Source of the DNA: Zygnema circumcarinatum SAG 698-1b
Taxonomy: Eukaryota > Plantae > Zygnematophyceae
Direction of reading: 5' to 3'
Length of the DNA: 64,000 nt
NCBI GenBank assembly: GCA_037447605.1
Contig: CM074813.1
Coordinates: forward strand, 2,852,001-2,916,000
Both the position numbers and the translations under genes were made by a program. Shown in pieces: positions 14,357 through 60,800 of this stretch. The notes under the pieces are model-generated. The model searched no databases. It worked only from the letters and a program-made list of their open reading frames with translations, and was not told the DNA's origin. How positions within the stretch are numbered: position 1 is the stretch's first letter; each line of letters starts with the position of its first letter.

Positions 14357-14375
14357 CGTGGCGGGTCGGGATTGG
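14357..14375 (-). promoter_or_regulatory. ERSE-type composite CCAAT-N9-CCACG
   Basis: Plus strand reads CGTGG-cgggtcggg-ATTGG. Confidence 0.5.
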
Positions 14376-15599
14376 CGGGATTGGTTCGGTTTTTTTAAGC
14401 AGGTGTGTCTACTCGCCGCCGGCCCTTGCAGCTTTTCCTTTTTCCCCCTAAAAAGGCCAAAAAATTCTATCCTTGGAAGAATTCAGGTGTGAGATGCATT
14501 TTCCATTGAGGTGTTATCTTCTGCTCTGGGTCTTGGAACTTGAATTTTTGAACTTGAAGTTGAATTGAACTTTGACCCTCGAAGTTGAGCCGGAATGAGT
14601 TTCCGTTTTTCACAGTGGACAGCCAAGGCTACCACAAGATCCACCCACTGTGTGAAGGCTGCTGCACAACCGGAAAGACAATGTCAGTGGTGGATCCAGA
14701 ATTTTTTTGCTGAGGGAGTTTGAGCATAAATCCATAAGATAGGATTAAGAAAAGTTGAATTTTCTCTGCGAAGTCGAAGTCGGCCATCAGCAATATAACT
14801 TTGTTCCTTGTTATCGGCACAACGGAAAAACCCTATTTCCACAACGCAGCCATTACAAAGCAAGACAACCAATCACTGACCACCTGACGCTGTGCTGCTA
14901 GACGTTGAGCATTCTGTTACACATTGACCCCGTCGGGGTTCCACCAAAGTCGTCCAGGACTATGGTTGACCCGCACGTGTGAGATCCCGTTGATCCCGGA
15001 AAACATCCGGATCCCACGTGACATTCTCCACCCAACACCGCACCGGTCGCCAATGTATGTGGGTTCCATGTAGCGCGCAGTTACAACGCTGTTGGACCAG
15101 CCCGAAGTAGTCAAAAAAAAACAGTTCTCTGTGCAAATACAGTTCTATCCAGTGTTACGTCCGATTTGACACATGGGAACTAATAGATTTCGTAAACTAT
15201 CTGTAGTTCCATTACAGTTCGAGACTCACCTTGACGCGAGATCTGCGCAGATGTTACCGTACTGACTTGGAACATTATACGACAAGCATCGAATCTAGCA
15301 TTTTCTTGACTTTTGGCATTATGCTATGTCGGGCCATTGACGTGGCAGAATTCGAATCTCAAAAGTCCACTCCATATCCGATTCGTAACTTGACATTGAT
15401 GCGTACGAAAAATCGTATCCGATCCTTCAATTTGTCTTGTTGTTTCCCTAGTATCCGTACGTTCCGAGACCGGCAGCAACTCAGCCGGACCCGAACGAGC
15501 CCACCGTCCGGGAAACTGCCAGCCGTACGGCCAGGAAGCTGCGCGACGTGGCGCCCTGGGAACTTGGGTCGGACCGACGACCACATCGATGGCTGTAAG

Positions 15600-57800: not shown

Positions 57801-60800
57801 TCTCTCTCTCTCTCTCTCTCTCTCTCTCTCTCTCTCTCTCTCTCTCTCTCTCTCTCTCTCTCTCTCTCTCTCTCTCTCTCTCTCTCTCTCTCTCTCTCTC
57901 TCTCTCTCTCTCTCTCTCTCTCTCTCTCTCTCTCTCCTCTCTCTCTCTCTCTCTCTCTCTCTCTCTCTCTCTCTCTCTCTCTCTCTCTCTCTCTCTCTCT
58001 CTCTCTCTCTCTCTCTCTCTCTCTCTCTCTCTCTCTCTCTCTCTCTCTCTCTCTCTCTCTCTCTCTCTCTCTCTCTCTCTCTCTCTCTCTCTCTCTCTCT
58101 CTCTCTCTCTCTCTCTCTCTCTCTCTCTCTCTCTCTCTCTCCCTCTCTCTCTCTCTCTCTCTCTCTCTCTCTCTCTCTCTCTCTCTCTCTCTCTCTCTCT
58201 CTCTCTCTCTCTCTCTCTCTCTCTCTCTCTCTCTCTCTCTCTCTCTCTCTCTCTCTCTCTCTCTCTCTCTCTCTCTCTCTCTCTCTCTCTCTCTCTCTCT
58301 CTCTCTCTCTCTCTCTCTCTCTCTCTCTCTCTCTCTCTCTCTCTCTCCTCTCTCTCTCTCTCTCTCTCTCTCTCTCTCTCTCTCTCTCTCTCTCTCTCTC
58401 TCTCTCTCTCCCTCTCTCTCTCTCTCTCTCTCTCTCTCTCTCTCTCTCTCTCTCTCTCTCTCTCTCTCTCTCTCTCTCTCTCTCTCTCTCTCTCTCTCTC
58501 TCTCTCTCTCTCTCTCTCTCTCTCTCTCTCTCTCTCTCTCTCTCTCTCTCTCTCTCTCTCTCTCTCTCTCTCTCTCTCTCTCTCTCTCTCTCTCTCTCTC
58601 TCTCTCTCTCTCTCTCTCTCTCTCTCTCTCTCTCTCTCTCTTTCTCTCTCTCTCTTTCTCTCTCTCTCTCTCTCCTTTCTTTTTTGGCCTCTCTTCCTTT
58701 CCTGCACCCTCCTCCTTTTCTCTCCTTGCCCACCTCCTCCCTTCTCCCTCCTTCCTCCCTCCTTCCTCCTCCTTCCTCCTCCTTCCTCCCTCCTTCCTCC
58801 CTCCTTCCTCCCTCCTTCCTCCCTCTTCCTCCCTCCTTCCTCCCTCCTTCCTCCCTCCTCCTTCCCCCCCCCCCCTCGTCGCCTCTTTCCCCTCGCCTCT
58901 CCCTCTCCGCTCTCATTGCCCCCTTTCTGTTCCCCCTTGTTCTCCGCAACCTTCCACTCTCTCCTCTCGCATTCCGTTTTGTGAAACCTGCCCATCAACA
59001 AAAAAAAGCAATGAATGAAAATAAGATGTCAAGCATGTTTAACATCACTTTTGATGCTTATGTTGACGCAGATAACATACAACTCGCTCATGGCGGTATG
59101 CAGTCGTGCCGGCCAATGGCAGGAGGCCCAGCAAGTGTTTGACGACATGGAACGGAACGGAATTGAGCGCGACATTTTCACATATAACACCCTCATTGAT
59201 GCTCTATGTAAAGCGGGACAGATGAACCTTGCAGCTCAGGCAGTGGAAGGCATGAGGAAAGCAGGGATTGAAGCTAATGTGGTAAGCAAAGGGAACATAA
59301 AAAAATTTCAACTTCTTTCCCTTCTTCTTAAAGACAAAAAAGAAGATTTTCTGAAGCAGGAATAGAACGGTTGATTGTAGTTTGAAGGGTGAGATCAGAA
59401 CTTTGTACTGTGGGCTTGCAGGTGACGTACAGTACAATGCTTGACGGGTTTGGAAAGGCAGGAAGAGTTTCAGAAGCTCTCAATATGTACCACCTAATGA
59501 GGTCTGCGGGAATCCGACCAGACAGGTATAGATGTATATCTTATTCCCTTCTTGAAGTAAACAGACAAATAAACATTCCTTAATTTTAGAGAAATGGGGA
59601 GGTAAAAATGAATCAGGGCGTTTCAGTGTAGTACATGCTGGAACATCTGATCGTATAATATGTAAACATTTTTAATTACGTTTGTGGACGGCTGGATGAT
59701 GCTGATGATGATGATGATGATGATGTTGGCGATAGTAATGATGTAGTGAGTGTACGGTGATGTTGGAAATGCAGAGTGATGTTCAACACGCTGCTGGATA
59801 TGTACGGCAAAGTGGGGAAGATCGATGAAGCTTTAGCCATTCGGGAGGAGATGGAGGGGGCGGGCTGGCGGACCGATGTGGTATGTACAAAAAAAAAACC
59901 CGAAAAAAAAACATCACAGTCTAGAAATCTATGACACCCTAAAACTCAAATTTTCTAAAGCACTGAAAAACTGGAAGCCTTTCGATCCAAAAGTCCCCAA
60001 TACGCTAATATCCTTGTAACTCGGAAACCTCTTTAGCTTAAAAGCTGTGATCGGAACCATTCTGAGATCATGAAAACTTGAACCTTCCAAGGAGCTCTGA
60101 ATCTTGATAATTCAATAAATAGATACAGAAATTTTGTTTTCCTAGATTGTATGAACTCTCCCACACAGTATAGATTTTTTAATTTTTGATTTTTTTCTTT
60201 TTGTTTTGGAAATTTGTGCCTGTTAACCAGGTGTCGTACAACGCCTTGATTGATATGATGGGCCGGGCCGGAAGAATCCGAGAAGCTTCTCGACTTTTTG
60301 ACGAAATGAGAATGACAGGAATGAAGCCAAACGTGCTGACGTGGAGTGCTCTGATTGGAGCATACGCTAAAGCAGGGCTCCATGCAGAAGCGATGAAGTT
60401 CTTCCACGACTTCAAGAAAGCGGGCCTTCAGGTGGGTCCTGACGTGGCGCGTTTGGATTGGATGCTTTCGCTGCTGACGTGGCTCTCTCGTATTGGTCGG
60501 ATGTCGCTGATGTGGCCCGTCAGGGCATGTTGGTGGAAGTGAAAACGGTGCTTCGGTTCAATTGTTTCATTGAGTTGAACTGTTTCTATGTGAACTGTGA
60601 GCTGTATTGTTAAACCACTGAATTGAATTGAACTGAACTGACATGTGTGTTGTTTCTATGTGCCCTGCAGCCGGATGTGGTTCTTTACAGCTTACTGATT
60701 GACGTGCATGGAAAGCATGGTCTTGTGGAAGAGGCCAATGCTCTCCTAACTGAGATGACGAACGCGGGAATTCAACCAAATATTGTGACATATAACAGTC

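Follow-up and report, generated by a model that had tools for sequence, protein, structure and literature searches.

A composite CCAAT-N9-CCACGT element of fixed spacing is enriched in a 64-kb stretch of the Zygnema circumcarinatum genome and occurs mostly in CpG islands next to gene 5' ends

The window analysed here is a stretch of 64,000 nt from the genome of Zygnema circumcarinatum SAG 698-1b (assembly GCA_037447605.1, contig CM074813.1, positions 2,852,001 to 2,916,000 of the forward strand; positions below are counted from its first base). It contains nine exact copies of the composite sequence CCAAT-N9-CCACG, in which two half-sites are held nine bases apart as in the endoplasmic reticulum (ER) stress element I (ERSE-I). 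The fixed-spacing element is over-represented in the window, and nine bases is the only enriched spacing. The exact copies are independent of one another and share an extended consensus, and six of the nine occur in or beside CpG islands next to the 5' ends of genes. Cooperative binding of NF-Y and a bZIP protein across the fixed spacer, as a general module of proximal promoters, probably accounts for the element.

A scan of both strands located the exact copies at 14357, 15888, 21477, 41193, 52496, 52657, 60340, 60443 and 60478, six on the minus and three on the plus strand. All nine had been placed at these positions by a sequence-only reading of the window, and every one-mismatch variant with a 9-nt spacer listed in that reading was recovered within a few bases of its approximate coordinate. 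The expected number of exact copies is far lower, with a mean of 0.05 in 100 dinucleotide-preserving shuffles of the whole window. Because the copies sit in CpG-rich DNA, shuffling was also confined to 500-bp blocks, where 300 shuffles averaged 0.083 copies and never exceeded 1. A comparison of spacings such as the sequence-only reading had proposed, run within the window, showed an excess at a spacer length (x) of 9. In CCAAT-Nx-CCACG with x = 0-30, nine matches are found at x = 9 and 0-2 at every other value. The other three relative orientations of the half-sites showed no spacing peak over the same range, with the sole exception of CCAAT-N12-CGTGG, whose five matches are the same sites read through the palindromic CCACGTGG. 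The base following CCACG is T in all nine exact copies. When one mismatch to CCAAT-N9-CCACGT is allowed, 27 sites are found at x = 9 versus 0-4 at the other spacings of x = 4-15. Similarly, the relaxed form CCAAT-N11-ACGT has 12 matches, compared with 0-4 at other spacings in x = 0-40. The plant-style form CCAAT-N10-CACG is matched 11 times in the window, and every exact copy satisfies it.

Base-bias statistics for 24 non-redundant sites, restricted to positions outside the search pattern, showed that the conserved part of the element extends beyond the two half-sites. Position 13 is G in 21 sites (p = 1e-10), position 12 is C or T in 23 (p = 2e-6) and position 20, directly after CCACGT, is G in 16 (p = 1e-5). 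On the other side, the base directly after CCAAT is C or G in eight of the nine exact copies (p = 0.016) and in 16 of the 24 sites (p = 0.058), and the second base past CCAAT (position +6) is A or G in 18 of 24 (p = 0.011). The other spacer positions carry nearly no information, and the extended consensus is approximately CCAAT-S-R-N5-Y-G-CCACGT-(G). CCAAT boxes bound by NF-Y prefer C or G and then A or G on their 3' side. The partner half, (C/T)GCCACGTG(G/T), is of the strong G-box/abscisic acid-responsive element (ABRE) class. The full CACGTG hexamer is present in four of the nine exact copies and in 16 of the 24 sites; the remaining five exact copies read CCACGTCA (three copies), CCACGTCG (one) and CCACGTAG (one). 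Thus, the conserved unit is an ACGT-core half-site rather than an E-box, which favours an ACGT-core bZIP over a basic helix-loop-helix (bHLH) protein as the putative partner.

The exact copies are not copies of one repeat. They carry nine different spacer sequences, and BLAST comparisons of their 150-bp flanks showed no homology beyond self-overlap. An invariant core combined with unconstrained spacers is the pattern expected of a binding site under selection. An all-against-all BLAST comparison of 320-bp segments around the 27 sites showed, besides overlapping segments, only two groups of similar sequences. One consists of the sites at 36987 and 40842, which belong to a repeat family and are 85% identical over 137 nt; the other consists of the sites at 37128, 37202 and 37449 in sub-repeats that are ~80% identical. 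These repeats fill the 7-kb spacer between the TPT-family transporter gene and the lumen-type protein gene (Table 1), and all sites carried by them are variants with a changed CCAAT or CCACG (CCAGT, TCAAT, CGACGT). NF-Y binding requires all five CCAAT bases in the systems studied (PMC3730095), and the sites in the sub-repeats would therefore be poor NF-Y sites. The repeats thus carry look-alikes, whereas the canonical copies are not repeat-borne. The sequence-only reading had described some copies as carried in a repeat family and in a Harbinger-like miniature inverted-repeat transposable element (MITE), but only degenerate variants are repeat-borne in the window; its suggestion that MITEs had spread the element finds no support for the canonical copies in the window.

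Two further features of the repetitive DNA were observed. The word AAAATGGGGTAT recurs ~15-25 nt from each repeat-borne variant (36944-37446, 40590-40900), so that the repeated unit seems to be AAAATGGGGTAT together with a variant element, and AAAATGGGGTAT might be a second protein-binding site. Elsewhere, a nearly identical segment is present twice (1380-2123 and 3640-4383) on either side of an assembly gap (3368-3377), with identical open reading frames (ORFs) and an exon that resembles DPAGT1/GPT by eye; this may reflect a real tandem duplication or an error of the assembly.

Some sites are combined into larger modules. Mirror pairs consist of a plus copy followed by a minus copy, at an offset of 34 in two cases (15853/15887 and 41158/41192) and of 32 in one (53706/53738). 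The resulting modules of 54, 54 and 52 bp have the general form CCAAT-N9-CCACGT-N12/14-ACGTGG-N9-ATTGG. Their inner and spacer sequences differ, so the three modules are not copies of one another. Same-sense tandems are found at distances of 35, 41, 50 and 103 bp. An arrangement in which a single G-box is shared by CCAAT boxes on both sides (offset 16, six cases) was also considered; it is not significant and was discounted because the palindromic CCACGTGG already supplies six of the 11 scored bases.

The sites are strongly associated with CpG islands. Gene bodies in the window are depleted in CpG, with an observed/expected ratio (o/e) of 0.35-0.75, versus 1.0-2.0 in discrete islands, and sequence with a CpG o/e of at least 0.95, which makes up 16% of the window, holds 19 of the 27 sites (p = 7e-10). 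Six of the exact copies lie in or beside islands upstream of the TTC39-like, ARM-repeat, thylakoid-lumen-like, ARPC2 and pentatricopeptide repeat (PPR) genes. The genes were identified exon by exon, and the ORFs were scanned with Pfam. The gene assignments of the sequence-only reading hold in this analysis, including the Ran-like gene, which is preceded by variants only, and the ARPC2/PPR pair. The mirror module of the TTC39-like gene ends 344 bp upstream of the start codon and that of the lumen-type gene 557 bp upstream. The three sites of the ARM gene lie 478-863 bp and the two variants of the Ran-like gene 406-475 bp upstream of the respective start codons. ARPC2 and the PPR gene are arranged head to head, and the 3.35-kb spacer between them holds two exact copies and three to four variants, with a CpG island at 52.5-54.0 kb. 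All five unpaired copies upstream of the ARM and Ran-like genes, the two unidirectional cases, are sense-oriented, with CCAAT distal and CCACGT proximal to the gene (p = 0.03). GA/CT-rich microsatellites between the element and the start codon of the TTC39-like, ARM and PPR genes would fit long 5' untranslated regions. The variants at 25004 (CCACCT, in the ARM ORF) and 55205 (in PPR coding sequence), and perhaps the one at 13449, could be chance matches, of which other spacings have 0-4.

Table 1. Sites, genes, repeats and assembly gaps in the window
Feature	Position	Strand	Description
Assembly gap	14003-14012		344 bp from the exact copy at 14357
Exact copy	14357-14375	-	Reads CCACGTCG; second CCAAT 7 nt upstream
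54-bp mirror-image double module	15853-15906	both	Plus half variant (CCAGT), minus half exact (15888-15906); inside CpG island
TTC39/Iml2-like gene	ATG 16250	+	Pfam Iml2/TPR_39
Three same-sense sites, ARM gene	21436-21821	+	21436 variant, 21477-21495 exact, 21802 variant; all in CpG island
ARM-repeat gene	22299-25658, ATG 22299	+	Pfam Arm, E = 2.8e-36
Two one-mismatch variants, Ran-like gene	26516-26585	+	CCACCT; TCAAT
Ran-like Ras-family GTPase gene	ATG ~26991	+	Pfam Ras family
TPT-family transporter gene	ATG ~34770	-	Pfam scan of ORFs
~210-bp repeat unit	36919-37082, 40563-40727, 40774-40938		Carries CCAATCAGG-N-CGCGCGACGTGG; CCACG half changed to CGACG
Repeat-unit variant	36987	-	CCAATCAGG-N-CGCGCGACGTGG
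~70- and ~250-bp sub-repeats	37122-37468		CCAGT or TCAAT-N9-CCACGT at 37128, 37202 and 37449; weaker at 37379
Variant	40175	+	CGAAT
Repeat-family copy variant	40842	-	CGACGT; 85-89% identical to unit 36919-37007
54-bp mirror-image double module	41158-41211	both	Plus half variant (CCACAT), minus half exact (41193-41211)
Lumen-type protein gene	ATG 41768	+	Transit peptide and twin-arginine lumen-type signal, judged by eye
tRNA-Leu	44924-45004	-	Rfam and tRNA scans
ARPC2 gene	ATG 51507, stop ~48.03 kb	-	Nine exons by eye; P34-Arc match in the ORF set, not tied to one ORF
Divergent exact pair	52496-52514, 52657-52675	-, +	Towards ARPC2 (-) and towards PPR (+); edge of / within CpG island
Further variants, ARPC2/PPR island	52862, 53057, 53706-53757	-, +, both	The last a degenerate 52-bp mirror pair
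PPR gene	54855 to ~63074	+	At least 14 blocks collinear with orthologous contig L004
Assembly gap	55749-55758		Inside PPR gene; 525 bp from nearest variant (55205-55224), >3 kb from any exact copy
Three exact copies inside PPR gene	60340-60496	-, antisense to gene	60340-60358 in exon; 60443-60461 and 60478-60496 in intron

The islands and genes showed some features of their own. Within the window, CpG o/e peaks (up to 2.0) in an island at 12371-13058, which contains tandem CCGTACTA- and CGTAT-type repeats and 14 GTAC words per 500 bp. GA/CT-rich tracts occur just upstream of start codons at 16125-16238, 22092-22241 and 53892-54039. The Ran-like GTPase (26991-28300) has WDMPGQ where canonical Ran/Ras proteins have WDTAGQE, and its switch II region is thus altered. 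The ARM protein, taken from three start codons, has no exact match in protein collections, and word searches with the ARM ORF and the lumen-protein exon returned no protein of this genome among the matches.

The sequence-only reading had also placed copies upstream of an ARPC2/GUN1 gene pair. This holds for the copies at 52496 and 52657, whereas those at 60340, 60443 and 60478 lie inside the second of these genes, in antisense orientation. This gene, named GUN1-like in that reading, encodes PPR repeats, and an SMR domain was not confirmed by Pfam. Its exon structure was fixed using an orthologous genomic contig of a related alga (L004, 5843 bp, Logan assembly of run SRR9302961; 77% protein identity over the query exon). 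The exon that contains the first intragenic copy ends at 60425 (CAG/GTGGGT), with an identical boundary in the ortholog, and the next exon begins at ~60668. Read on the plus strand, the copy at 60340-60358 is in frame and encodes Thr-Trp-Ser-Ala-Leu-Ile-Gly, with which a PPR repeat begins. In the ortholog the peptide is the same, but its threonine codon is ACT, which abolishes the ACGT core; the exon copy is therefore explicable by the coding sequence.

The two other intragenic copies fall in the intron that follows, no more than 71 nt from its start. An origin by duplication from the exon copy was discarded, since by eye the three copies agree in few if any of the nine spacer bases, although their 14 defined bases are the same. 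Two further exact copies within 140 nt are neither chance nor the result of a recent duplication. The corresponding intron of the ortholog is ~70 nt long and contains no copy, and the only site on that contig with at most one mismatch is the coding-derived one. All three intragenic copies share the extended core CCACGTCAG (equivalent to TGACGTGG on the other strand), a core of the unfolded protein response element (UPRE) type. On the plus strand (60337-60496) they all read CTGACGTGG-N9-ATTGG, whereas the copies in promoter islands mostly have CCACGTG(G/T), and the copies with the TGACGTGG core may form a subclass of their own. The cluster coincides with a small patch of raised CpG (o/e 0.98) in the otherwise depleted PPR gene. 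Rfam and tRNA scans found nothing near it; their only hit was the tRNA-Leu listed in Table 1. The triple copy is either a regulatory module, intragenic or antisense, that is specific to this species or, in the case of the exon copy, a side effect of the coding sequence. We read the two intron copies as an intragenic element peculiar to this species that might serve as an antisense or internal promoter.

One assembly gap lies inside the PPR gene (55749-55758). The blocks flanking it (55218-55304 and 56137-56193) align to positions 1966-2052 and 2402-2458 of the orthologous contig in the same order and on the same strand, and the two sides therefore belong together. The blocks fall in different frames, and frame continuity across the gap is not establishable; the gap has no effect on the motif count. 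Comparison of the two PPR genes showed conserved exon boundaries and very different introns (~70 nt in the related alga vs. 240-1500 nt in the window). The CpG o/e of the gene body is also lower in the relative (0.15-0.3 vs. 0.5-0.7), which points to far stronger methylation or CpG decay in its gene body. Two (CT)n microsatellites of ~1 kb each and 98-99% purity occur at 60-1142 and 57687-58674, the latter in a PPR intron.

We consider the element to be a bipartite transcription-factor site with ERSE-I geometry. Its CCAAT box would most likely be read by the NF-Y trimer and the ACGT-core half-site (Y)GCCACGT, nine bases downstream, most likely by a bZIP dimer, and the two proteins would bind cooperatively. 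The element would then act in transcription as a proximal-promoter module that many ordinary genes use, present singly, as a same-sense tandem or as a mirror double of 52-54 bp, and placed a few hundred bases before the start codon in CpG islands that look unmethylated. A general NF-Y/bZIP promoter grammar had been suggested in the sequence-only reading; with neighbours outside the unfolded protein response (UPR), it fits better than an element restricted to stress, and the bound factors would be those predicted from the half-sites.

A real composite may instead be read by other factors, such as a bHLH or other G-box binder, a CCAAT reader different from NF-Y, or one protein or complex that covers the whole 20-bp site. 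The partner half is a G-box in 16 of the 24 sites, human NF-Y takes up fixed positions relative to USF and MAX, two E-box factors (PMC3730095, PMC4889920), and the window data do not identify the proteins. However, a CANNTG E-box is absent from five of the nine exact copies, the half-sites are arranged precisely as in the NF-Y/bZIP ERSE that animals and Arabidopsis have conserved (PMC3645738), and the bases past CCAAT follow the C/G, then A/G order. Reading by other factors is an unlikely explanation. A role in chromatin rather than in promoters, for example in keeping CpG islands unmethylated, as a boundary or as an origin-associated site, would agree with the strong island association against CpG-depleted gene bodies, with the CpG-rich patch at the intragenic copies and with the binding of NF-Y and USF in closed chromatin described in human studies (PMC3730095, PMC4889920). 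Islands and promoters coincide in the window, so that the two roles are not separated by position, but the uniform orientation of the five unpaired copies towards the downstream gene fits a transcriptional role better, and we regard a chromatin role as quite improbable.

It is still harder to regard the element as a genuine ER-stress element, with the neighbouring genes as targets of the UPR in this alga. Its sequence is an exact match to ERSE-I and to the plant ERSE (pERSE), and the UPRE-type core, CCACGTCA / TGACGTGG, is present in the three intragenic copies (PMC3645738). However, no gene for an ER chaperone, ER-associated degradation (ERAD) or folding is found among the flanked TTC39-like, ARM, Ran-like, lumen-like, ARPC2 and PPR genes, in agreement with the remark in the sequence-only reading that the neighbours are mostly not UPR genes. 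Exact copies occur about once per 7 kb, much more densely than a dedicated stress regulon needs, and the secretory-type genes of the window (the TPT-family transporter and a weak Sec20-like ORF) have no exact copy upstream. A UPR role is accordingly very improbable. Least credible is a dispersed repeat or MITE fragment, in which the similarity of the sites would reflect shared ancestry and not function. Variants do occur in the ~210-bp family (36919-37082, 40563-40938) and in the 70/250-bp sub-repeats (37122-37468), and NF-Y sites ride on long terminal repeats (LTRs) in mammals (PMC3730095). The exact copies, in contrast, combine an invariant core with nine different spacers and no common flanks, and every repeat-borne site is altered in CCAAT or CCACG.

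Several observations weigh against the favoured reading of the element as an NF-Y/bZIP promoter module. Binding by these proteins is a prediction from site sequence and geometry, and the significance of the base preference next to CCAAT is weak. Promoter placement is predicted from CpG islands and distances to start codons. Of the nine exact copies, three lie within a gene in antisense orientation and upstream of no identified gene. The copy at 14357 has no assignable gene, since Pfam scans of the ORFs at 6.7-15.1 kb gave no useful match. The related alga has no copy in the ~1.6 kb upstream of its orthologous PPR gene, despite a CpG island there. A scan allowing up to one mismatch found no site within 1 kb upstream of the TPT transporter gene or of the TFIIIC-subunit gene beside the tRNA, so the element is common and not universal.

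It is possible, but in our view doubtful, that the ERSE-geometry composite and its 52-54-bp mirror form are a default block of a large share of the RNA polymerase II promoters in this alga. If so, the stress-restricted ERSE of animals and flowering plants would be either a specialised remnant of an older general NF-Y-bZIP promoter grammar or its use in parallel, and the intragenic triple copy, specific to this species, would be the sign of an antisense or internal promoter. A genome-wide distribution would amount to a simple promoter grammar defined by sequence, with one 20-bp composite that is often mirror-doubled. It would bear on the origin of the NF-Y/bZIP partnership known from the ER-stress response, and would provide a compact promoter-building part for streptophyte algae, in which few regulatory elements are defined. 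No description of the element as a general promoter motif in streptophyte algae was found in the open-access full-text literature. Control loci from a moss and a lycophyte (Sphagnum, 23.5 kb; Diphasiastrum, 23.1 kb, two versions) contain no x = 9 site even with one mismatch, which shows that the density seen in the window is not general; these samples are very small and do not date the element.

Comparison with known systems showed both close likenesses and clear differences. In ERSE-I, CCAAT-N9-CCACG, NF-Y occupies the CCAAT half and ATF6 or XBP1 the CCACG half (PMC3645738). The window copies have identical half-sites on the same strand, the same 9-base spacer of free sequence and a similar occurrence in multiple copies. 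However, they flank non-UPR genes at a very high density, carry the YGCCACGT(G) extension and form mirror pairs of 52-54 bp. In plants, the corresponding elements are pERSE (CCAAT-N10-CACG) and the plant UPRE (pUPRE, ATTGGTCCACGTCATC), and bZIP28 acts with NF-YA4/NF-YB3/NF-YC2 (PMC3645738). The exact copies fit pERSE and the intragenic ones carry the CCACGTCA core found in pUPRE, but the Arabidopsis pERSE is described for ER-stress genes only (PMC3645738). The human modules in which NF-Y is stereo-positioned with USF or MAX at 10-12 bp (PMC3730095, PMC4889920) likewise place CCAAT at a fixed short distance from a CACGTG-type site, at unrelated genes and also within repeats; NF-Y binds many LTRs in human cells (PMC3730095, PMC4889920). 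Their E-box is given at -12/-11 relative to CCAAT, and the window conserves CCACGT rather than a full E-box. G-box/ABRE sites (ACGTGGC), the targets of GBF, HY5 and ABF bZIPs, differ in having no fixed CCAAT partner nine bases away. As the neighbours are not UPR genes, the window copies agree with ERSE-I and pERSE in sequence and differ from them in context. Judged by its sequence, the element would thus work like an NF-Y/bZIP composite and is not classed as an ER-stress element.

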